64,000 nucleotides of DNA from Klebsormidium nitens (Eukaryota; Plantae; Klebsormidiophyceae). The position numbers and the translations under genes are program-made. Positions 6,501 to 43,003 of the stretch are shown here, piece by piece. The stretch is taken from positions 124,001 to 188,000 of the forward strand of contig DF236987.1 in NCBI GenBank assembly GCA_000708835.1, read 5' to 3'. Positions within the stretch are counted from its first letter, which is position 1, and each line of letters begins with the position of its first letter. The notes beneath the pieces are model-generated. The model did no database searches, was not told where the DNA came from, and saw nothing but the letters and a program-made list of their open reading frames with translations.

Positions 6501-9500
6501 AACGTCCGTTCGTCCTACCGGACTGGAATGCAAGCACGTTAAGATAAACTCTGACAATTTAAAAATGTCAATGCGAACAAGCATACGAAAACGCTGGCTC
6601 GAAAAAAAAAATCGCAGCCCTTGGCAGGTGGGGAGACGGAGACGGTCAAATGAACTTTAAGAAATGGAACTGAATGGAATGGAACGGAACGGCACGTCAT
6701 CCGTTAGTGGATGGTGAACTGAAGATGTGGGACTGAGTTGGGAAGCACAAAATGAATTGCAATGTGCGCTGTGGCAGCAGAGCTTGCAGCTATAATCGAG
6801 GGGACGATTTTCGGATACGTCTGTGTAGCGACTGAAGTTTCACCACCTGCTGTGTGAGCCAACTGATATCACGACTGCCGACTCTATTCGTCAATGAGAT
6901 AACATCTCATGGATCCTCTTCGACCAAGTGTAACTGACTGGGTCAAAGTGCCGCATTGTACAGCTCTTTGCGTCAAACCTGCCATCGGGTTTCAGATGCT
7001 CCGATCATGGTCCCTGATTTTGGACTGTTCGATCGACGACAAGGCAGGCATCGGACGGCCCAAGATCAGGAACCACGCTCCGAGAGTCTGGAACCCGATG
7101 GCAAGTTTGATGCAAACAGCTGAACGCTGAAAGCAAGGGTAAAGTTTCACTTAGTCGCCAGGCGATTCTTACTTGCATGATGCGAAGGAACTCCTTGCCA
7201 GCTGGCGTCTTCTCGTAGGTCTTGGCGGTATAGTTCCAGAGCGGTCCCTCCAGCAGGGGGTAAAGGTACCGGCCATCGGGCGACTGAGCCATGCCCTCGA
7301 AACCCTTTGAGTGCTTCAGCTCGTACACTGCAAAAGCGCATGGGATGACGTCAGGATTTTGTACTCGTAGATGCTTTTCTTTTGGATATTGCTCGTCGAA
7401 GTTGGAAAGTGGTGCAATCTCTGCTTGTGACGGGTTGACAAGATATTGCAACCAAGTCTTTGACAGTCATGCTCGATGAGCGTCGAGAGATGTGTTTGAA
7501 TGTTTGCCGGTTCAGTCGTCTCGACTCTCAAGAAAAGCTAGCCATCGAGAGATGGCAGTGACAAGCAGGCCCTTTCAGGATTTGTTACTGGTCACTCCTT
7601 TGACGCTGCTGACAAAAACTGTCTTGGCCCTCATATTTCTGTGGCAAACTCTGTAATTTTTGAAGAGGATCACTTTCCCCAAAGAATGACGAGTTTTCCA
7701 TGAAGATGTAATTACCTTAACGGTTCTGAAGACGTTTTTTTTGGAATATTTTCAGCTGTCCATCAGACTTGGAGATACGAAAAGGCAACGAAGTGCCTGG
7801 CATTCCAGATTCCAACCTAGAAATGCTTGAGCGAGCAACACATTGCTCCTTATCCGAGACACCAAAGTGGTCGCGACTCACCAGGGAGCGACGCGTCGGG
7901 GTTGGGCAGAATGAGCTTGTCGTTGTCGGGGCTGCGCACGGCGCCGAGTCCGGGTACCACGGTGTCGTAGAAGTTAAGGACCTGGAAAAGGAGGGTTATG
8001 ATACGGTTGATCTCTGGAAGGACCGGGGAAAAGGAGGTCATGCTATGGTTAATTTCTGGACGGACTGGGGAAAAGGAGGTTGTGCTACGGTAAATCTTTG
8101 AAAGGACCTGGAAAAGAGAGGTTATGATATGGTTAAAGCTCTGGAAGAACCTGGAAAAGGAGGTCATGTTACGGTTTGGTCCGTTTAAGGATCATCCCTG
8201 ACTAGCTCTGGTTTAGCCGAAGACCTGGGAAAAGGGGGTTATGATGCAGTTAGTCGTGGTGAAGGATCAGCCCTGACTAGCGCTGGTTTATTTGAAAACC
8301 TGGAGAAAGGGGGTTAAGATGCGATTAGTCTTTGTTAAGGATCAGCCCTGACTAGCGCTGGGTTAGTCGAAGACCTGGGAAAAGGGGGTTGAGATGCGTT
8401 TAGTCCCGGTTAACTGGACCAGCCCTGACTGGCGCTGGTTCTGCCGGAGACTTAGTTTGTGCGTTCAGCGATATCAGGTAGGCCTCAGCCATGTGATGGT
8501 GTCTCGACACGGGAAAAAGTTCACAGATTCTAGCAGAAGCAAACCATAAGAACGGCTCGTGGCCATTCTTCCTGTGGCACGAACTGCACGCGTAACGAGA
8601 GTGATGCATCAATACACAAGAATCTCTCAAAACTCGTAACGGCTTGGAGGCGTCTAGACGTTGAATCCAACGAACTAGACGAAAGTCGCGAGCACTTGAA
8701 TCCCCTTCCGTTCACCATTTTTTCTACTGCGCACCAAAGACACAAATCCGTCCTCTTTGGGAGATGTGGCGCCGTAAACGGCGTACTGGTTGTCACGCCC
8801 CGATTACGAAAAGAGAACAACAAGCATCGAACTTACTAGCTTTACCATGTAATATTCCACTTGGTTTTAAAAGGCTACTGTAGTGCCCTGATTACAGGCA
8901 ACCAATGCAAAACCTAATCCCAAGCCCGCCGGTGGGTACCCGGTTCGGACGCCCGGTACGTACCTTGCCGTCCGCAGCGTTGACCTCCAGGAGGTACGGA
9001 CCAAACTCGTCACCGAACCAGTAGCTGGTACCAACCGGCTGGATGGACTCAATGTCGAAGTCGGAGCCGGTCAGGTAGCGCTTGGACGTGTATTCGTTCT
9101 GCGAATGAGAGGGTTGGGAGTAAGATTACGTGTCTTTTTGGGTCGTGGAAGCGTCTCGATATCTGCTATGAGAGTCTTTCGGACGTGCTCTTATTGTTGG
9201 ATGTATTTCCTTTGTGTGGGTAAGACGGGGGGGGGGGAAGGCGTGTCGTTCGAGAGTCTTTCGAGAGTCTCAAGAACCGCGTTTTCAAAAGCACGTCCCA
9301 GTAGAGGCACGGTGGATCGAGTCCAGAGTAAGTCTGAAAAAGGAGACCATATCCATCAAAATGGGTCTTCAATTGAGGGAAAACATTCAAAGCGCGATAT
9401 CGTTTAATTGGACGTTTCCGTCGGAACCAATCTCAAAGCCTACTTCAGACCGATCTCAGTCCGGGATTTCTTTTTCGGTGCGCCACACGGGGCGCTTACC

Positions 9501-29472: not shown

Positions 29473-32400
29473 CTATTCGAGCGAAGGTCTATCGCAGCAG
29501 ATTTCTGAAATGGAAGTGCCATCCATTAGCGCTTTGGTGCAAGGCTCCAACCCGTTCGGATTTCGAATACTATCCCTCACTTCTTGTACGAAGCTCTTTG
29601 GGCAGAAGGAGGTCGGTACCGCAGGGAACGCTTTTGCGCAACTATACGCATACCCGGTACTCCATTCGTTGAAGCTTTCGAAATGGAGTGCGTTCGCTTC
29701 CTCTAGGGTCGACGCAACCCCACTGCTTTTGAACGAGCAAACGAACTCTAGCAGTACCGCAGTAATCACAGATTCTGAAGCAACCGGGGGGGCGTCACTT
29801 AGCGTAACCAGTGAAAAGAATACCCGCCCCGTCAAGGCTCGGCAGAGGTCTCCAAAAGCAGACGCAGCTTCAAGCTCTATATCGTCCCCTCGCAAAGTGA
29901 CGGGAATGAAGATTTGCTTGCCGGGTCGTCGTCTTTCCCATTCTGCGGAAGAGGCAAACATGGAGAGTCTAGGTTGAGAACAATATGTCAGATGTCTCAG
30001 CAGAACATCTGGATGGGAGTACGCAGGAAAAAGACCTTCCACAATCCGTTAAAAGATCAACATGGCATCTTCGTTCGTCATACAGTGAATACCGTTGGAC
30101 TAAATGTCGGCAGGTATAGAAAGATGATTCTGGATCTCATCAAGCGGCAAATCCTGGAGATCTATACCGTTGAGAAGCCGAAAACGCCCACCGGCATACC
30201 CACCACAAACTCCCATTCAATCCTCACAGCACCAGGAACGAAACATCCAATAGAAAGAAGACCCTTGTATTTCACACTCGAACCCCTGACTGCGTTGAAC
30301 GTCTTACCCGTGTTCTCCAGGAAAAACTCCCAACTCTATCTCCCACAGCACCAACAACAAACATGCTGTAAATGGACAAATCCGATACCGTACACCGAAA
30401 CCCCTGAATACGTCGAAACTTCTTCCCCGGCCCCTCCACCAGAAACTCCCGCTCAGTGCCCTCAGCACCAACAACAAACTTCTTCCTACAAGAAGTTTGT
30501 TCCATTCTGCTACCAAACACCAATGCGTTGGATTTTCTTACCCGTGTCCTCCACCAGAAAATTTCCCACTCACTTCCCCTCAGCACCAATGACAAACATC
30601 CCAGAGAAAAAGACCCACGCAATCACACCCAAACTTTGAACGCAGTCAAACTGCTTACCGGTGCCCTCCACCAGAAACTCCCCCTCAGTCCCCTCAGCAC
30701 CAACAACAAACATCCTGTAGAAAGAACATTCTGCTACCAATGCGTCGGATTTCCTTACCCGTGTCCTCCACCAGAAAGTTTCCCACTCACTTTCCCTCAG
30801 CACCAATGACAAACATCCCAGAGAAAAAGACCTACGCAATCACACCCAAACTGTGAACGCAGTCAAACTGCTTACCGGTGCCCTCCACCAGAAACTCCCC
30901 CTCAGTCCCCTCAGCACCAACAACAAACATCCTGTAGAAAGAACATTCTGCTACCAATGCGTCGGATTTCCTTACCCGTGTCCTCCACCAGAAAGTTTCC
31001 CACTCACTTTCCCTCAGCACCAATGACAAACATCCCAGAGAGAACGACCCATGCAATCACACCCAGACTCTGAACGCATTCAAAATCCTTACCCGTATCC
31101 TCCACCAGAAACTCCCGTTCCGCCTCCCACAACACCTTCCCCGTCTTGGTCCTCAGCACCAGATGCCCGTCGTTCCCCAGCGCCATGTGCGCCGCCTTTT
31201 TCGGCTCTTGCACCGTGCCCGTCGCGTGCTTCACCGACCCGTCGAACGCGTACGCGACCAGATTGCCGTCGCCCTGTTGCAAAGTTTTCGAGATTTAAGG
31301 ATTCTTAGCATTCGGGGGTTGGGTGTTCTCAGGTTTCGGGGCTTCTGGGTCAAGAGGTTTTAGCTTTCCGGTTCATCACTTGAGGTGAAGTGTTGACAAC
31401 TTACAAATGGAAAGCCGTGGGGATAATAAGATTGCCAGCCGGAACGGGTAGGGCTACATTGGGAATTCAAGGTGGGTTAAGGTGTGAGGCAGGTGAATCC
31501 GCGGGTTAAACATCAACTTACTTCCGAGTTCACTCGTTCTAAAAAGTCACGTCGTCTGCAGGCGACCGCCCAGTCGACAAGGAGTCAGAGGACCGAACAA
31601 ATGGCGGGATTCGGAACCGTAGAACCGAGAGCGTGGTATCCTTAGTTGCTTCTAAAGGTTCACTTGACACACCCTCTGGACGACCATGTCGCTTGCAATG
31701 TGGGCGTTCCACGTCTTACATCTCAAGTCGATTCTCAAGTTGATTCTTGACGTCCATCAGGAAACAATGCGAAGAAGAATCGAGTCATTCACGCGCCTGG
31801 GTTTGTTGTCTTTGGTGGACGGGTCGTCGTGTATGGGTCATCACCAGAGGGGCTTCGTAGGTGAGATTTGGCGAATTTCACATATTTCAAAGTTCAGAGT
31901 TTGAAATTTCGGGCTTTTGACCTGCCTGGAACTCGATGTAGTTGATGGACATGTCGTTGCACATTGGCCACCGCCAGATGGGCTCAGAGGGCGGGTTTTG
32001 GGGTTATAAGATTAGGATTGAAGGGTTTAGCTTGTCCGGAAGTCAAAATAATGGACGAGTCATAGTAAATGGGCCACAACCAGGAGGATTTGAAGGGCGG
32101 GGACCGAGCATTCCACCCTTGCGAGATTTGAAGTTTTAGGGTGTCCACTTGCCTGGAACTCGATGTAGTTGATGGAGGGATCGTCGCACATGGGCCACCT
32201 CCAGATGGGCTTGAAGGGTGTCGTCATGGTGTGCATCACGCACTCCCGGTTCTTCTGCATGATGAACATGTACTGGAAGTTGGGCGACACCAGCCGGTCG
32301 CCCCCGCCGATCGTCAGCCGCTTCTGGTCGAACACCTGGCGGCCTGCAAAAGCAAGATAACCGGGTTTTCACAGGAGGCGGAGACGACAGGCGCTTTTAC

Positions 32401-35400
32401 AAGCAATAAAAAAAACAGGGACTTTTCGCGGGGGTTTAAACCACACCAGCCCATCGCCCCCGCCAATCGTCAGCCGCTTCCGGTCGAACACCTGGCGGCC
32501 TGTGAGACAGGACAACCCGGTTTTCACGGAGGGGTTTGACTTAAAGGTTGGTCATTGTTCATAGGGTTTTCACGAAGAGTTGGCCGACACCAGCCAGTCG
32601 CCTCCGCCGATTGTCAGCCGCTCTCTGGTCAAAAATCTGGCGGCTTGCAGAGCAAGATAAGCGGGTTGTCGCGGGAGGGTTAGAAGTAAGAGGTCTATCT
32701 CGAATTCAATGATAACAAGGTTTTCAAGAAGTTTGGGCGGTTCGGGTCGCTGAACCCCGCCGATCATCAGCCGCTTGTGGTCGAACACCTGGCGGCCTGC
32801 AGGGCAGGAATCAACCGGGTTCTCAGGGGGTTTAGCGATAACAGGTATATCACGAGGTTTGGAGATAACAAGATATTTATGAGAAGTAGCGACTTCAGCG
32901 GGTTGCTCCCACCAAACATCAGCCGCTCTTGGTCGAACACCTGCCGACCTGCAAGGCAGAATAACCAAGTTTTTGCCGGGGTTCGTAGATGACAAAGTTT
33001 TCGCGGTATGAGGAATAAAGATCAGCAGGCTTTTTACGGGGAAAAAGAGGTGACAGGGTTTTCACGGGGGTTTGAAGAGGACAGGTCTTCCCCGGTGCTT
33101 CCGAAGATTCGTGCCCTCAAAAGTACTCTGCAACTTCCGGACTGGTCGAGAGGTGCCACCAATGGGGTCAGGCATATTCTGGCTGCACACTTGGCGACCT
33201 GCAAGGAGGTGGATCAAGGTCTCAAAGTTCCTGAGTCGTCGACAGAGCTGGGTACCATATTAAGGTTCCGACCCTCTCCAGATTGGGGAGACGTTAACTC
33301 GCGCAACTGGTCGAGGAGCGGCGTGTGATCGCCAAAAAAAAAGAGCGGAAACTTCAGTTCTGCTCACAAGACGAATTTTGACGACCGGCAAACCCGACAA
33401 AGCCCGAAGCGCAAGAGCAGAAAGAGAAGCATTTGCGACAGCTCTCTACTTCACACCCGATCTTCGACCTCCTAACCCGACTGCTCTTCACACAATCTCA
33501 TCTTGTGAATGTTGTAAACGCGTCAAGCAATCATTACACACTTGCGTTGTCACGCAATGGGCACACAAAAAGACATCCAACTGACGAAACAATTCGTTCA
33601 GCCTCAGCAAGATAGTAAACGAGCAATTATCCGCTTCCGCAAGCAAAAGCTCGTTAGACAGTCTCAGTTTTAATCAATTTAAACCTAGGTATCAACTTCT
33701 CAGAAGTACGGCACTGATGGGACTATCGAAAGCGTGCTTCTGTTTGTACATTCAATCATAATCCTACGCTCCTTGGAAACACTGGCTCTCAAAGGTATGG
33801 CGAATGAAGACTTTAGGAGGGCTGAAAGCGGGTCTCGAAAGGAATTCTGCCAGTCCTGACGGAAAACAGCCCACCTGCGCTGTTGAAGTAATACATGCTC
33901 TGCCCAGGATCCGTATTTCGAGACGGGTACGCATCTGCGAAACACAGCACGATCGATATATGAAGCAAGCTGATATGGTTGCAACGCCTGCTCATGCGGG
34001 TCCAAGTCTGTTCCGCCAAAGTCTCGGCTCATGAGGAGCCCTTTGATCGAGAGTGTCTTGCAGAAGAACTGACCCTGAGAAGGGGGTGCAAACCCGGTTT
34101 GCGAGAAAGAGCGAAAGCACACCAATGTGCCTCGATTCCGTACTCCAGATCCTTAGTCCCCAGCTCCTACGTCCAGACCGGAAATAACCGACCTTTTGAG
34201 ATATGAGTTCAACTGCAAAGACTTCTCGAAACACCCTGCCCTTCGTTGTTGCCCCGTTTCCTGTACCTATCCTAGGTATCCCCAAACTTTGCAACCATCG
34301 TGATGCCAGAATGCGCTCTTAGTCTCCACCTGCTTCAATCAGGCACACTCTGGTTTCCTTGACCGACAACCCTTGCAGGTAAACCCTTGATTCAGTATTC
34401 AGCTTCTAAAGATTTTCTAGGCACCGCAAGTGGGGCGAGCCTGTAATTGCCAGCACCCCCGGGACCTGCTGTAGTAGGCGCTCCATATCTTTTGCCACAC
34501 ACCAAAATAAAGCGGCTTGTGATCTGTGCCAGCAAACAAAGAAGGAAAGCGTCCGAACGCTACATGCAACCTATAGGATATGGTTAATCATAACACTCCG
34601 CAATCCCGCAACCCCTACTTGCTTTGTTTCGACACTCAGCTGCCGTGGCCTGAGAACCTCATCGGTGCCCCTGATTAAAAAAATTCTAACTTTGCAAAGA
34701 CCGTCAGTGTGAAAAGGAGTACCCTGCTTCGGTTAGGCACTCCGCTGCCTGGCCGCGCGTCAATGGATAACCCTAGATTCAACAATCCTAGACACACACT
34801 CGCTATCAAAGTGTAAATTTGACGAACCCGTTTCGCTAACCTGCTTCGGTTAGGCACTCCGCTGCTTTGGCCCACAGCCCCCCGGGGATCCCCCTAAACC
34901 CAGCACTCGTAGACACCCAAAAACCGTCATACGGTGAGATTGGTTAAGCCCTTTCACTAACCTGCTTCGCTTCGGCACTTCATTAACTGACCCACGTCCC
35001 CCGGGGATAACCCTAAACCCTATAACTTCAGGCATCCAGAAATTGTCCAGATTGACAACAAAACCGTTTCGCTAACCTGCTTCGGTTAGGCACTCCGGTG
35101 CCCTGGCCCACGGACCCCGGGGATACACCGTCACGCCCTGACTATTCTCCTCGTATTTCCCGATGAGCGCCGCCTCGCGGATGCTCTCGTGGTGGATCGG
35201 CGCGCACGTGACCTGGCGGGGCACCGTCAACTTAAGCCCCCGCAGGTGTCGCAACGTGTCCCGCACGAACTGCATCGGATGACAACATCGGGATTCAGAA
35301 ATGTAGGGGTTTTGGGCATCGACGCGATCAATGTTTTCCTCGATCATCATTGCTTACTCTTTGCATGGCGGAAGCGCCGTNNNNNNNNNNNNNNNNNNNN

Positions 35401-38400
35401 CCGTTCTTATTTGGAATTTTGGGGTGTCGAGGCGATCAATCTTTTCCTCGGAAGAGATACTCTTTGTAGGAGGGAGCGCCGTCAACTTGAGGCCCCACAG
35501 GTATCGCAACTGTCCGGCACAAATTGCATAATACAAAAGCGGGAAAGTGTCGATACGGCCGTTCGTATGTCGAGGGACCCAAAACCCTATCAAGATTATC
35601 CGAGTGGTGTCGTGCGGGTTGAGGAGGACTTTCTATAAAAGGAGGAACAAGGGCGGGGGGCGCCTACTTCGACGCCCGGAAGTGTCGCAACGTATCCCGC
35701 ACGAATTGCATCAGAAAACAGCATGATGTATTTGAGTTTTAGGGTGTCAACGCAATCCATTTCCTTTCGGCATCGACAATCATTTGCAGCTGCTTCTGCA
35801 TGTGACGGATGAGCTTCAGCGAAACGAGATTGAGGCTAGGGGGCCCCGTTGAAGCTGGCGCAATTCGTGTCAAAGAAACGGATGGGGAGACAACAAGGTT
35901 TACTGGTTCCTCCTGTATTGAAAGAATCAAAAGTCGTTTCGGGGTGAACTCGTCCGGACTAGAGTGAACAGGGAATGAGATGTCGGTGTGGTAAGCCGAT
36001 CCCCTCCTGCATTGAAGACACCTGTTTTTCTTGTTGCTTCATTTCTACGTTTTGAGAAATCCAAGTCAATGGATAAACGACATCACTGATTCTCCCTTTT
36101 CCAGAAACAATCCCGCCCGTAACCCATCTAGCTTACACTCGAGTAGCGGTCCAACAACCTGGATGACTGCCCTTCCACCAAGTTATGTCTCGAGTCCGAT
36201 GAGTAACCGTCAGCCAATCATGGTGGGAGCAACAGCGCATTTTATCTGCAGAGACTCTAAAAAGCAAAGGAGTCTGAGACGCCGTACCGACATGTCCATA
36301 TCCGGGAGCTTGCGCCAGGGGCTGGGTTGGATTCCGACGTCGAACGGAGCCTCCTTGAAATGCGAGGGCAGCTTTTTCGACCGCGCGAGAACGACGTCTT
36401 CCCATGCGGGCTCGTCGACGCCGATGACGACCCGCGGGTCCATGACGATGCGCGTGTCGTTCCCGTACGCGCGCCAAATGTCTTTGCACAAGAAACTGTC
36501 GAGAAAAGAAGCGTGAATAAGTCAAGTGTCCAGCCAGAAGCGCTTCTAGCTTCATAATAACAAGTTTTCCGAGATTTCTGCGAAGGTGCTTAACTTTTAC
36601 TGAACAGAGCAAAGCATTCTATTTTCTATACGGACTGGACGGTCTTGCGCTTGAGAGCGGTTCACAGATTGATCCGAGGGAAAGAACTAAGGGTGGAAGT
36701 CTCTTGGTTCCTATTTGACGAAGTCCACCGGCGCAAGGGATACTCTGAGCCGGCTTTTGGCAATTAAGTGCACAATCGAAAGCATCCTACTCCGTTTTCC
36801 TTGACACGTCGGGACAAGCGAACACGTGGAACAACGTGTGCTAAGCCCAATCGCAGCGGTCCAAACGGCTCTGCACGATCGGAAGATCGGAAATTCAGAA
36901 GCTCTGTCCATGTAATGACACGGCCTGATGTTGGATCAGTTTGAAATATTCGTAGACCCAACCTTGAGATTACGCCCTCTCATTAGACATGACCTTGATT
37001 CGACAACACGGTCAGACAAAACTACCCTGTGCTGAATTAACAGCCAAACGCTTGCAAATGCTGAGAGGCTACGTGCATGAAGAGCCTCATCCAAGCCATT
37101 TGTCCCACCTTGGGACCCCAGGTCCCTCAGAATCTATTTCACCAAATTTCGGAGGCAGAGTCTCCCCCCAGTAAGAGTTTCGCCGCTCCCGCGAGTGCAA
37201 TTCAACAACACGACGACATATGCCTTCCGCACTGGTATGTTGAACATGTCTAAACCTGACAATGTGCTGCTCAGATTGGATCGGACCCTTACGAGCCGTC
37301 CCGGTTTGTCCGGAATGTTTCCACACTAGTTCCTGCAACGACATAAGGCGATTCACCTGTACTCGGAGGCCGCACACTCGCCCTCCCAGCCGCGGTTGCG
37401 GAACGTGATGCGCTTCTTGTAAAACACGTCCGCATCAATGTTGACGGCCCCGTGGCACGCGCAGAAGACGGGGAACGGCTTGCCCTCCGCAAACCTGGGG
37501 TTAGACAGCAGAGGAAGAGTTAGTACGGGGGATTCATGGTGGAGCGGAACTGGGGTTATAACCGCCGGGGTGAAGATTGATCGGATCAAAGTTTGATTCC
37601 GCTACATAAGGGTGGTGCTGGAACTAGACTAGGGACTGACCGGAAGGCCAGAAGCGGAGTTATATTCCAGTCCACAGCACCTCGGTGTCGAAGTGAAGCG
37701 AGTAACAATCATGTTGATGGATTGCATACGAATTGAGACATGAACAATTATTGCACCGACAGGGAACCGGGGCATTGCTGAGCGGGGATGCTGCTCCTGC
37801 CGCTTTTCGTCGCACTGATCCGCCCGACACATCCCATAAACCTCAAAAGTGAAAGAGGAAACCAAACGAACCAAAGCAATACAAAAGACAGGTGCAAAAT
37901 TAGCGACGAAAGACAACGCACCACTGGCGGAACTGCGGAATGTTGCTCAGCGGGAACTCGCGCCCCTGCTCCTTGCCGTTGACGTCCCGCCCCACCCACG
38001 TGTCATACACCTGCAGCCGGCGCGTCTTCTCTTCCTCGCGCAGTCCGATCGTGTCGACCGCGGTCACCATGTGGGCGTCGTGCATCAGAAGAAGCAGAAT
38101 GTCCTCCAGGCACAGGTACCCGTCGTTGAGGATCAGGACCCGGTCGAAGCGGGGATGCTGCAATGCGGGTGGGGGGACATTCCAAAGTAAATCACGGAAT
38201 ATGGTAGGTCGAGGAAGACATTTGGGAGAATCATAGCTTCGTTGGTTGTCGAGCATTGAGAGAAGCAGAGTGTACTTCAAGCACAAGTATCCGTCGCTGG
38301 GATCAGGACCCGGTCGAAGCGGGGATGCTGCAAAGGCGGGGTGGGGGGCTTTAGAGAGTGACGGGATGGAAGCCTTGAGGGGTGGGGTTGAGGACAGTCG

Positions 38401-41400
38401 AGGATTTAAAGCGTACTGGTTGTCAAGCATTTAGCAGAATGTCATTCCAGGCACAGGTAACCCGTAGAAGCGGGGATGCTGCAAAGGCGGGTTGGGGGAA
38501 AAGGTAGCTCAAAGGAGAGATTGTGGAGTGTTGAAGAATCAAAGCTCGATTAGTTGTCGAGTATTAGGAGAAGCAGAATGTCCTCCAGGCACAAGTAACT
38601 GTCGTTGAGGATCAGGACCCGGTCGAAGCGGGGATGCTGCAAACGCGGGTTGGGGGACTTTGAAGAAAGTCAAAGAACATGGTAGCTCGAGAGATTTTGA
38701 AGGGTTCAAGAATCAAAGCTTGACAAGTTGTCGAGCATTAGAAAAAGCAGAACATCTCCAGGCACAGGTAACCGTCGTTTGGGAATAGAACCCGGTCGAA
38801 GCGGGGATACTGCAAAGCAAGTTGCGGGGCATTTCAAAAAGTAACGGGATAGAGACCTCGAGGAGGAGAGTAAAGAACACTAGGAGAAGATAGAGCAGGA
38901 TCAGCTGTCGAGCATTACAAGAAGCAGATTGTCCTGGAGGCACAAGTAACAGTCGTAAGGATCGAGACCCGGTCGAAGCGGGGATCTGCAAAGGCGGGTG
39001 GCGGAAACTTTGCAGAGAGTTAGTGGATACGGAGGATATCTCTAGGGGGAAATGGAAAACACCAGAAACGATTGAATGGTCCATTTGTCGCACATGAGGA
39101 GAGGTAGGATAAACTACAGGCACAACCAGCGGTCGCTGAGGTTGCCGACGACTGCAGAAAGATAATCACAGAAGCTTCACAGGAAATCACGGAGTCGAAT
39201 TTCTATTGAGGTAATTCCGAGCCCCGCTAGCAGCTTTGTGCAATAAGACCAAAGGAACGCAGCAGGACGCTGCTAGCTGGAGAGGACAATCAGAGATTTT
39301 CCTCTGGGGAACGAGGGTTTAAGGGAACCATGTCCAAGTTACTGGCCTTGCAACAGGACAAGAAGAATAGTTTTTGGTGATGAAGTAGCCGTTGCTCAGA
39401 TTGACGACCCGTTTGAAGAGAGATTCTTGAGGCGAAGAAGTCGGACTTTTCGAGACAACGGGTTCCATAGCAGCTACAATCGTCGTTCACAATGACGACG
39501 CGGTCATGGAGGGGCTCTATGAAGTGCCGCTGGATTGAAGAGCGAAGGCGGAACTGAGATTGCAAGTGGTTACACTCTGATGGCCCGCCAAGGTGGCCAC
39601 CGCTAGCTGACCGGTTTAGTGAAAACTTCCTACTAACCGTGATTAGATCTTGGGAGGGTCTGGGACAGGAAGGGACACATGCTTTCTGGGGCGTAGCATG
39701 GCTGTGCGGTCGAAACAAGGCGTCGCAGCCCTTGAAGAACAGCCACTAGAAAGCCAAGATTAAGCAGCCCAGGCGTAGAAGATCTCGGACGAAAGTCAGG
39801 GCACTCAAAGAGGGTACAACACTCATCGAACATGACTGTGAAATTCGGAGTCAAGCACGCACCGGTCGCGGTGCCCCGTCGTCCTTCGCCCACGCGAACG
39901 AAAGCGCGTGCACCGCCTTCTCGGACGCGTACCCTCGCACGTCCTCCAGCCTCGCGCCCTTGCTCTCCCACCCCTTCTGCTGCACATTGCCCGCAGCCAA
40001 CATGCGCCCCAGACTCGTGGTGACGACAAGCTTCGTCACCTCATTACCCCCAGCCCCCGCCACCGACACGACGACCTCCTTCGGTTTCAAGATGAGCGCA
40101 AATAGCTCCCCAAGGGGGGATCCAACCCGACCCTTGCGGACCCCCCCAAAGCTGAATTGGATGCCGTAGATTTTGGACTCGGACGCGTAGACCTCGATCG
40201 CTGAGAGCGGTTCGCAGCAACCATGCCCGTGGTAGTACTTGCCGGCGTTATGGTTGCCGAACGGACCGTGCCAGATCTGCACGTAAACCAAGCAAACGGC
40301 GGTCAGTGGCAGAAATCTTGTGGCGAGCCTGTACTGAGAAGAAGCGGATCCTAAAGAGGCCATTCAGATTGCCCTTGCACTCGAATGTCCAGAATTCTAA
40401 TAGTACCGAGATTGATTTTTGTCCAGGCGCAGGGCAAGCAAAACGGTTCGTGCTGTCGAACGGAAATGGATGCCCTTCAGGACTTGAGGTTCTTTGAGGC
40501 GGGCGCCAGATGCTTCGCTGAGCACACTCTCGCTGAGCCCCTAGTCTCCTCGGTTATGCTTGACGAGCTCTGACAACCTCCGAGCTGACCTATGTACCTG
40601 TTCGGCAAGTCTTGCATTCCCCGCATAGGCGCGTGCTCACCTCGTGCAGAAGGGGCGCCAGCGCAGTGTTCCGCGCGTTTGCCAGGAAGTCAATCCGCGT
40701 CTGGTCCGCTCGCTTCCCGACGCCGTTGGTCAGGATCATGTTCGGGATCTGCAGGAGGCGTAGCTCCTCTTTGAACGTCTGCAGTTTTTGGGGGGTGCTG
40801 TCGGAGGACCCCGACTCGTAGATGGAGATGTACAACCGGGAGGGGCCTAGGTAGTCGGCGAGAAGAAGGAGCTCGCCACGGAGGTGGTCGAACACTGCAG
40901 AGAGGGAAAAAGTTCCAATCAAGTCATCCTTTGTGTATCGTGCATAGAATGTGCGGCACTGGCACTAACGACTTCCAGGTCATAACATTTTGCTGGTTTG
41001 AAATCGTGACCTCTTGCTGCTTTTTCAAATGAAGCTGGACAAGTAGATCTGCGGTGCCCCAGATAGTTGGTGAGCAGAAAGGAGCTCGCCGCATAGCCGG
41101 TTGAATACTGCGGAGATGGAAGTTTTGTAAGTCCGCAGAGAATTTGCGGCGCATTTCACTAACGACTTTTCAGACATGAACTTGAATCAATCCTGAATCG
41201 AAAAGGGACATCTCCGATTGGAAGGGCCGCAGGTAGTCGACAAGAAGGAACTCACCGTACACGTGGTCAAGGTGCGGAGATGGGAAGATTCAAATGTCTT
41301 ATTGGACGAGGACGCGTTCAGCTGAGATTAGCTGCTCGCTGTCTGGGTGGTCTTAAATTCGAAACGGCATCCAGGTTCAAATCAGTACAAGTAGTTGACC

Positions 41401-42482
41401 ACTTGACTGACGTCGACTCTGATACTTTCAGTGCAAGACCGAGAAAAGGTCTAGCTAAGAGTGCGCGGGTCAAAATCTTGTTCCAGTGAATGGTCGAAAA
41501 GTATTGAAAGGTTCAGCACCTGGTGCCAAAGACTGAGTAGAATCGAGCTCTGAAGCTGAACTTGGCTGGCCGCACAAGTGCAGAGGTGGGGGCACAAGGG
41601 CAAAGGTGCGTGTTGGCGCATACCCAGGCGTTGCTGACAGTCAAGCCCAGTGACAGCAGAATCTGATGAGTCAGGTAACAACAACTTGGACAGAAACGCG
41701 TCTGTAGACTTTCTGAATTGCCCTAGTCTTTCAAAGGACCAAGAGACTAAGCAGATCATTGAGACAAACAGGGGAAGATGCAAGTCAGCTCAAAGCTGGA
41801 GACAGTAGACTACTGCAGAAGTTTGGAATGATTAGCCTACAATTCAAGTCAATCTATTTCACACGCCGTCAGGAAAAAGCAAGGACCAATCATGGGGACT
41901 GCCTATGATATGACCAATGGAAACAAAACTGCGATCCAAATCAAGAAACGTTCAATACTATATTAAAGATTGACGTAGTTATGCATACCGGTGTCCCCTC
42001 CTGAGGGCATCTTCTGGGCCAATAGTACCTCTTCCAAGTTTCTGATGTGAATCCTTGCAATTGCTTGATTCTGCTTTGCGGTGTGATGCACGCACAGAAC
42101 GTCACTTGGAAAGTGAAAGGCTTCAAAGTGCTGACATCATACACTTCAGCATTTTAACGTGCAGAAAGTGTTGCGTACCTTGCTCGTTGTTTTTCAGGTT
42201 CATCGCAAGAAAGATTCGCTTTTTCGCCAGCTTCACGTGGGCCACTCTGTCGATGCCCTCCGCCCAGTGCTCTGCACACGCCTCCCTGGTCCATCTCCTA
42301 TCCCCCGGCAAGGCTCTTATTGTCTCCCTTCGTAAGGCCTTGCTAGCCGAACATGTTTCCAACTCTTCAGAAACTAGACTATGTATGTCACCACTCCTGT
42401 GGAAATGGGACAGGGCCATGGAGCTCAAGCCTACCAAAAGGACGGCGCAGGAGAGAAGCATCAGGGCGCAAGACTTGAACAT
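29473..42482 (-). CDS. GT69 / CAP59-like (cryptococcal mannosyltransferase 1-like) glycosyltransferase with inserted jacalin-like domain and bulb-type lectin domain, about 862 aa
   Basis: Exons: 42179-42482, 40641-40894, 39863-40276 (jacalin-like), 37922-38157, 37357-37494, 36288-36495, 35077-35269, 32153-32343 (GC donor), 31093-31273, and probable last exon 29473-29942 (strong acceptor TGTTTGCCTCTTCCGCAG, correct phase). N-terminal hydrophobic anchor. CAP59-type motifs IFLAMNLKNNE, YISIYESGSSDST, RIDFLANARNTALAPL, FDRVLILND, YDTWVGRDVNG, PFPVFCACHG, FRNRGWEGECAASE, LCKDIW. B-lectin motifs LVSPNFQYMFIMQ, EFQGDGNLVAY, LGNDGHLVLRT, VLWE. Confidence 0.85.
30300..31090 (-). repeat. Tandem copies of the 3' end plus donor of the bulb-lectin exon
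   Basis: About 7 copies of TTTCTGGTGGAGG(A/G)CAC(G/C)G|GTAAG-like sequence spaced about 100-117 bp, including a near-perfect 217-bp higher-order duplication. Confidence 0.9.
32390..33210 (-). repeat. Tandem copies of GT69 exon 8 acceptor plus exon 5' end
   Basis: About 5 copies of CAG|GCCGCCAGGTGTTCGACC, near 32484, 32628, 32780, 32933 and 33185. Confidence 0.85.
34700..35740 (-). repeat. Echo copies on both sides of GT69 exon 7; includes the 20-N gap
   Basis: Donor-side copies of GGAGTGCCTAACCGAAGCAG|G(T/G) at about 34725, 34840 and 34960. Acceptor-side copies of CAGTTCGTGCGGGACACGTTGCGAC at about 35500 and 35690. Ns at 35381-35400. Confidence 0.8.
35381..35400. other. Assembly gap (20 N)
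   Basis: Run of n characters. Confidence 1.
38200..39150 (-). repeat. Tandem copies of GT69 exon 4 acceptor plus exon 5' end
   Basis: About 5-6 copies of TTTGCAG|CATCCCCGCTTC(G)ACCGGGTC at roughly 150-180 bp spacing. Confidence 0.88.
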
Positions 42483-43003
42483 ACTTACTGAGTGCCACCA
42501 CCCCTTTTGAAAAGTATGCGAGCGCGTAGCTCAGGAACGGGGCTGGTTTGCTGGTGGTACGAGTGCGGCTGTTCTTTGAGCGTTTGATCACCCACGTGAA
42601 AGCTCGCTCTTCCTTACATTTGTTGGGTGCGTTGTCACCGGCTAGTTCAAGGAGTTGTCGAAGCTAGCCCTGCTACCGGCATCAATTTACGTAAAATTGT
42701 ACAAATGCACGAGGATGCAGCGCGTGGGAAGACGCATTCCACCTCCTGGTGCAGAGTGGCTGAAAGGGCTCCCTTTCAACTCCAGAATCAAGAAAGCTTG
42801 AACGTGCAGATGCGGCCATTCCGGATCTCAAACACGAGGCATTGTTAGGCTTTTTGAAGATCTTCAATGCATCCGTTCCACTGCCCCATCCCAATTGATC
42901 GGTATCAGGCTTCCATCTCCGCAGAAACGTTCATTGCTTCTTTCTTCAGATCAGTTCTTGAAGTTGATCGAACCTTGTGTTGACTGAAAGTGCATGACAG
43001 CTG

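Follow-up and report, generated by a model that had tools for sequence, protein, structure and literature searches.

The window analysed here is a stretch of 64,000 nucleotides (nt) of contig DF236987.1 from the streptophyte alga Klebsormidium nitens (assembly GCA_000708835.1, positions 124,001 to 188,000 of the forward strand; all coordinates below are those of the window). On its minus strand, from 42482 to 29473, it carries a gene for a glycosyltransferase of family GT69 that combines the catalytic domain with a jacalin-like domain and a bulb-type lectin domain. The gene consists of 11 exons (E1–E11) with a total length of 2649 nt, i.e., 882 codons and a stop codon. The exon edges were delineated by three-frame translation and codon-level reading and settled by RNA contigs and an exon-by-exon phase check, in which no exon contains an internal stop and all phases are consistent. 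All ten introns are canonical, nine of the GT-AG type and one, after E9, of the GC-AG type.

A preliminary description of this DNA, derived from the sequence alone, had proposed a single phase-consistent spliced open reading frame (ORF) with a type II anchor, a GT69 domain with a jacalin-like domain between its halves, a bulb-type lectin and a cysteine-containing tail. The existence of the gene, its expression and the location of all these parts on the minus strand within this span are confirmed: the single frame is borne out by the splice model, the phases and the lack of internal stops, and the architecture by the gene model, the profile matches and RNA that covers E5–E11. The span proposed for the original 862-amino-acid (aa) model also holds, whereas the length does not, because RNA demonstrates a 60-nt exon (E8) and the protein has 882 aa; the shortfall of 20 aa is probably explained by the absence of this exon, which is of the same size. 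A model without exons 7 and 8 was rejected given that the phase check failed between 36288 and 32343, a conflict that the RNA resolved. The interpretation of 35077–35269 as repeat DNA beside an assembly gap was likewise abandoned because RNA shows that this segment is exon 7.

Relatives of this gene were collected as eight loci (L001–L008) from the contigs of exon-sized fragments, and each exon of the window gene was compared with them by tblastn. Two contigs of JGI metagenomes contain all 11 exons, in order and on one strand (L003, 57–89% aa identity; L004, 50–87%). The Logan contig L005 contains E1–E9 and then ends (79–96% identity for E1–E8, with E9 represented by an 18-residue fragment at 67%), and L006, from the same run as L005, contains E4–E11 (46–91%). 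The remaining loci, L001, L002, L007 and L008, all from Logan, are partial.

The GT69 Catalytic Domain

E1 (42482–42179) starts with the first ATG of the open frame and encodes a hydrophobic signal anchor, a stem and the first strand of the GT69 domain; it ends in phase 1 at the donor CAAG/GTACGC and is 61–83% identical at the aa level in L003 and L005. The hydrophobic stretch of ~20 residues, as read from the sequence, follows directly after the start codon and is retained in both these loci, and the protein is accordingly predicted to have a type II membrane topology with an N-terminal signal anchor.

The N-terminal half of the catalytic domain is encoded by E2 (40894–40641; donor GAG/GTGAGC, phase 0) and its middle part by E4 (38157–37922; 77–96% aa identity in L003, L004 and L005), which includes the stretch RFDRV.ILNDGYLC.ED, invariant in all copies. 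Both exons match the Pfam family CAP59_mtransfer (PF11735) above the gathering cut-off of 28.8 bits, as the preliminary description had anticipated: E2 at 7e-18 (65.6 bits, profile positions 14–109) and E4 at 5e-9 (36.6 bits, profile positions 112–178). Profile positions 187–242 are matched by the contiguous E5–E7 versions of L003 and L004 (21–26 bits), so that the GT69 domain is complete and in order (14–109, 112–178 and 187–242). The C-terminal part is encoded by E5 (37494–37357); its end, followed by the start of a conserved extension, is in E6 (36495–36288). This post-GT69 extension continues in E7 (35269–35077), with a motif TCAPIHH..., and is followed by the 20 aa encoded by E8 (33934–33875), which are 58–79% identical in L003–L006 and L008.

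The Jacalin-Like Insertion

The two GT69 halves are separated by E3 (40276–39863), a symmetric exon of phase 0/0 that encodes a jacalin-like lectin domain of 138 aa. As originally claimed, this domain matches Pfam Jacalin (PF01419) above the cut-off, with 25.0 bits for the exact exon against a threshold of 22; the L003 version scores 27.7 bits and P0001 25.4. Compared with the solved structure of ZG16p, a beta-prism I lectin, E3 gives 1e-6 when used as a single sequence and 2e-8 in the form of a profile of four sequences that covers 102 of 135 positions, and 28 of the 30 nearest ESM Atlas clusters are Jacalin clusters. On the CAP59 profile, the insertion point is between positions 109 and 112, and the RFDRV.ILNDGYLC.ED stretch follows immediately. 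By eye, the jacalin family alignment (A6) shows an invariant His where the Asp of the last sugar-binding loop (Gly...Asp) would be expected.

The borders of this exon are conserved. The E3 acceptor occupies the same position in L001, L003 and L005 and is followed 402–414 nt downstream by GT donors of phase 0; E2 likewise keeps its phase-0 donor in L001, L003, L004 and L005. These observations support, short of proof, the assignment of E3 as a constitutive coding exon.

E3 also lies inside a complete ATG-to-stop ORF (40363–39851, 170 aa), the first 29 residues of which resemble a signal peptide and which a prokaryote-style gene caller would report as a separate gene. Judging from the comparison of sequences, this ORF is probably a chance occurrence, with conservation starting only at the splice acceptor. 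Because the similarity starts at the acceptor and both the position and the phase of acceptor and donor are conserved, a free-standing jacalin gene nested at this site is unlikely. An exhaustive search of representative proteins with the jacalin ORF yielded 13 hits, all of them exon-sized fragments or unrelated jacalin proteins, with no GT69 fusion and no long protein of the same species among them.

The Bulb-Type Lectin and the C-Terminal Tail

The bulb-type lectin domain is encoded in two halves by E9 (32343–32153) and E10 (31273–31093), separated by the GC-AG intron. A profile (A3) constructed from the two exons of the window and the contiguous versions of L003, L004 and L006 matches solved beta-prism II lectins, namely pyocin L1 (3e-11), putidacin L1 (1e-10), and the daffodil and snowdrop agglutinins (~2e-7); more than 20 bulb lectins, garlic among them, are matched below 1e-3. 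E10 on its own matches putidacin L1 at 7e-6. An AlphaFold model of the L003 domain has a predicted local distance difference test score (pLDDT) of 64 and is all-beta, with 12 strands, and the top 15 Foldseek matches of this model are all bulb-type lectins (best E-value 1.7e-6, yet with a template modelling score of only ~0.35). The middle one of the QxDxNxVxY sugar-binding motifs is intact, Q-G/S-D-G-N-L-V-A-Y in the window, L003, L004 and L006; in the window gene this site (QGDGNLVAY) spans the E9/E10 junction.

The last exon, E11 (29942–29473), encodes a tail of 156 aa and the stop codon. The tail is 47–57% identical in L003, L004 and L006 and includes seven invariant cysteines (alignment A4). 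It belongs to no Pfam family, the search for homologous proteins was empty, and its ESM Atlas neighbours are all below 0.9. The AF2 model has a pLDDT of 53 and shows no convincing fold, the best Foldseek match being the N-half of GlcAT-I at an E-value of 0.025 and the best VIA match TarS at a Z of 7.7, within the noise range. The cysteine-containing tail of the preliminary description is confirmed, and by its sequence it is an orphan. The possibility that it represents a second, truncated GT-A half-domain was considered and dropped, given that hhalign finds no match to the GT69 N-half and the fold matches are at the noise level.

Transcript Evidence

RNA contigs of four runs, each from a different study (X1, X5, X6 and X15), were compared with the segment 31000–36600. 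X5, X6 and X15 each provide a single contig of 1714–1759 nt that runs from the last 44–59 nt of E5, read by the contig ends beyond 36499, through E6–E10, and X1 shows the same exon joints in high-depth pieces. E6 is included in the spliced contigs of all four runs; the joints 36288 to 35269 and 35077 to 33934, which delimit E7, were recovered in the four runs, as were those of E8 and E9, and RNA joints are available for E10 as well. The GC donor of intron 9 (CAG/GCAAGT) is used in all four runs, with GC..AG ends after an allowed shift of 1 nt (32152–32153). The X15 contig extends 833 letters past E10, and the first 30 letters beyond 31093 in the RNA contigs are those of the plus strand at 29913–29942, i.e., the start of E11. 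Hence the C-terminal part of the GT69 domain, the bulb-type lectin and the tail reside in one mRNA. The alternative that the lectin exons belong to separate transcripts is refuted, for the bulb-type lectin, by these joints to the GT69 C-terminal part and the tail in all four runs.

Paralogs and Selection

The protein libraries contain the GT69-lectin family as exon-sized fragments only. A length-restricted search, for which full-length models were beyond reach, retrieved five fragments with the L003 E5–E7 ORF and, with the jacalin ORF, only fragments of L005 and L001; a metagenome scan with alignment A2 produced no confirmed match.

There are at least two types of paralogs that differ in intron content. 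In L003, L004 and L006, E5-E6-E7 and E9-E10 are fused without introns, so that intron 9 of the window gene is missing and the bulb-type lectin is encoded by a single exon. In L004, an additional intron of ~1.6 kb (7054–8651) splits the jacalin domain after residue 57 of the exon, and the same is seen in L002 and L007, which come from the same organism. This is a case of intron gain or loss within the lectin module among paralogs or species, and because the domain is split, it cannot be a free-standing nested ORF in L004.

All exons compared with L005 evolve under purifying selection, with a ratio of nonsynonymous to synonymous substitution rates (dN/dS) of 0.05–0.135. The values are 0.075 for E1 and 0.047–0.076 for the catalytic exons E2, E4 and E5; for the jacalin exon the ratio is 0.135, at a dS of 0.57.

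Catalogued Fusions and Related Systems

The preliminary description had suggested that the architecture is novel, which proves too strong. In their survey, Van Holle and Van Damme (2019; PMC6362431, Supplementary Table 3) list the combination “mannosyltransferase 1 (CMT1)/GNA” for three genes, and the only column with an entry is that of Klebsormidium nitens; Supplementary Table 1 of the same work gives the K. nitens GNA genes as kfl00329_0110, kfl00004_0390 and kfl00038_0250, and the main text does not discuss the CMT1/GNA combination. The window gene, with the same pairing of a Cmt1-type domain and a GNA (bulb-type) lectin, very probably belongs to these three. The fusion of GT69 with a bulb-type lectin is therefore catalogued, albeit rare and unstudied. 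The catalogue entry differs from the gene described here in that it includes neither a jacalin domain nor a tail domain and comes with no transcript evidence; moreover, according to the survey Klebsormidium has lost or lacks the jacalin family, an assignment that the E3 match corrects. With respect to the searchable literature, what appears to be new is the insertion of a jacalin-like domain into the catalytic domain, the tail and its conservation, the proof by transcripts and the occurrence of the complete layout in related genomes. In the literature on GT69 in connection with Klebsormidium, jacalin or algae, we found no description of a GT69-jacalin-bulb architecture, nor did we find any other lectin fold inserted within the catalytic domain of a glycosyltransferase.

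The fungal GT69 members Cmt1, Cap59 and Cap6 are referred to as alpha-1,3-mannosyltransferases in PMC12493134. The fungal proteins (Cmt1, Cap59 and Cap6 of Cryptococcus and GT69-2 of Neurospora) resemble the algal protein in the near-full coverage of the CAP59_mtransfer profile and the N-terminal membrane anchor, but the family profile runs straight through positions 109–112, where the algal protein has the 138-aa insertion. To our knowledge, fungal GT69 members possess neither a bulb-type lectin nor a Cys-rich tail, and the family has been studied in fungi only, namely in the synthesis of the Cryptococcus capsule and in cell fusion of Neurospora.

Among proteins of solved structure, the closest to the jacalin-like module are ZG16p and mannose-binding jacalin-related lectins, and the closest to the bulb-type module are snowdrop-type (GNA) lectins and the bacterial lectin-like bacteriocins pyocin L1 and putidacin L1. 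All of these are free-standing lectins or toxin-targeting domains, in contrast to the modules described here, which are parts of a glycosyltransferase. A working analogy is offered by the polypeptide GalNAc-transferases of family GT27, Golgi type II enzymes of the GT-A fold that carry a covalently attached, C-terminal ricin-type lectin domain; this domain binds the enzyme's own type of product and steers further glycosylation. There is no homology between the two systems: GT27 is a different glycosyltransferase family, and its lectin is a beta-trefoil that is C-terminal and is not known to be nested inside the catalytic domain. Pfam analysis of the window protein returns GT69, Jacalin and B_lectin and shows no GT27 or ricin domain.

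Functional Interpretation

The gene is expressed, and we hypothesize that it encodes an 882-aa type II enzyme of the secretory pathway in which the nested jacalin domain and the C-terminal bulb-type lectin, followed by the tail, hold the GT69 domain on mannosylated acceptors; we consider this reading reasonably probable. Under this hypothesis, the GT69 domain, as its family assignment suggests, would transfer mannose from GDP-mannose in the Golgi. The lectin modules would keep the enzyme on acceptors that already carry mannose, in analogy to the role of the ricin-type domain in the GalNAc-transferases. Such tethering might favour dense or repeated mannosylation of a glycan or glycoprotein of the cell wall or mucilage. 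The role put forward in the preliminary description, that of a Golgi glycosyltransferase that serves the wall or mucilage and has glycan-binding modules of its own, is plausible. A more ambitious version, in which the beta-prism of the nested jacalin domain is part of the acceptor site and, jointly with the bulb-type lectin, makes the protein a processive mannosyltransferase that is tethered to its product and peculiar to streptophyte algae of the Klebsormidium type, seems doubtful to us.

Several observations weigh against the proposed function of a lectin-guided mannosyltransferase. The bulb domain stays below the Pfam B_lectin (PF01453) cut-off (16.5–20.3 bits against 32.4, with E-values from 0.013 to 0.0008), so that the B_lectin match expected by the preliminary description fails at the level of Pfam, although solved bulb-type lectins are matched by the family profile with E-values down to 3e-11. 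The first and third QxDxNxVxY sites are degenerate in all copies of the A3 alignment, and the alignment of the jacalin domain with ZG16p ends before the last binding loop. The RNA contigs break inside E5, and the spliced linkage accordingly covers the end of E5 to the start of E11, not E1–E5; skipping of the jacalin exon would leave the frame intact. Sequence searches found no solved GT69 structure or map of the catalytic residues, and we found no biochemical data for any non-fungal GT69 and no functional hint for other GT69 proteins outside fungi.

In an alternative reading, the architecture is real and the lectins do not guide the enzyme to its substrate, serving instead in structure, oligomerisation, sorting or quality control, or binding something other than the enzyme's own product. 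We consider this alternative rather unlikely. In its favour are the retention of only one intact QxDxNxVxY site of three and the truncated alignment with ZG16p, itself a secretory-granule protein with a role in sorting; the insertion also precedes a beta-strand, and the general geometry of GT-A folds would then place the jacalin domain away from the active-site face. Conversely, the intact mannose-type site is invariant across paralogs that are 50–67% identical, and both lectin exons are subject to purifying selection where it could be measured.

The jacalin exon could also be an optional cassette, or a separate nested gene defined by the ORF at 40363–39851 with its ATG, hydrophobic start and stop, with the main form of the enzyme lacking this domain. 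The frame is kept when the 0/0 exon is skipped, the 170-aa ORF is complete, and the RNA contigs cover no E2-E3-E4 joint. Nevertheless, we regard this possibility as improbable: in L001, L003 and L005, similarity sets in at the predicted acceptor instead of the ATG, acceptor and phase-0 donor are both conserved, and in L004 the domain is split by a further intron. The RNA words point in the same direction, if weakly, in that runs X15–X18 contain a fraction of 0.22–0.28 of the sampled words of 36100–42500, compared with expectations of ~0.22 with E3 and ~0.16 without it; over 31000–36600, X15 is nearly intron-free. A catalytically dead GT69 domain, with the protein acting as a membrane lectin or receptor, could be invoked because the lectin insertion splits the fold and there is no solved GT69 against which to check the catalytic residues, but is highly improbable given that E2, E4 and E5 are the most constrained exons, the RFDRV.ILNDGYLC.ED stretch is invariant in all copies and the Pfam scores are well above the cut-off.

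Returning to the lectin-guided mannosyltransferase, this gene represents a GT69 family of an early-diverging streptophyte alga that is expressed, is under selective constraint and is coupled to two different folds of mannose lectins. If the lectins indeed steer the enzyme, this would be an independent invention of the lectin-guided principle of the GalNAc-transferases. The nested domain would then also represent a natural case of a GT-A fold that tolerates insertion of a whole domain into a loop, which could be useful for enzyme engineering and for the study of algal wall or mucilage mannans.

Assembly Gap and Echo Copies of Exon Borders

The assembly contains a run of N at 35381–35400, inside intron 6 (36287–35270), where decayed copies of the exon 7 5' edge (repeat family D12) surround it. 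The contigs of all four RNA runs splice this intron out, with 36288 joined directly to 35269 and GT..AG ends, and because the gap lies within it, the reading frame is not affected. The gap is spanned by one X1 contig of low depth, which leads from 35401 to 35275 through 15 other letters and omits 35276–35380, and another RNA joint runs backward, from 35376 to 35224. These observations suggest that a local tandem duplication of ~150 bp broke the assembly at this point, and the letters adjoining the gap may be a misplaced repeat copy.

More generally, nearly every exon border of the gene is trailed in the adjacent intron by one to five decaying head-to-tail copies of that border, splice site included. 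These echo copies, with periods of ~115–236 nt, affect the 5' edges of E4, E9, E7 and E2 and the 3' edges of E9, E10 and E7, and are located at 38076–39016, 32278–32973, 31900–32218, 30180–31169, 34822–35122, 35225–35724 and 40866–41121. The RNA contigs use exclusively the copy that is joined to the exon body, not the echo copies. In X1 and X6, a second contig exits exon 10 at 31099 and continues with letters that match an echo copy near 30416–30482 (segments concerned, 31093–31111 and about 30400–30430); this could be an intron-retaining pre-mRNA, the use of an echo-copy donor, or an assembly path through the repeat. In the comparison with L005, DNA similarity is restricted to the exons and their echo copies, and comparable echo copies accompany E2, E4, E5, E7 and E9 in L003, L004 and L005.

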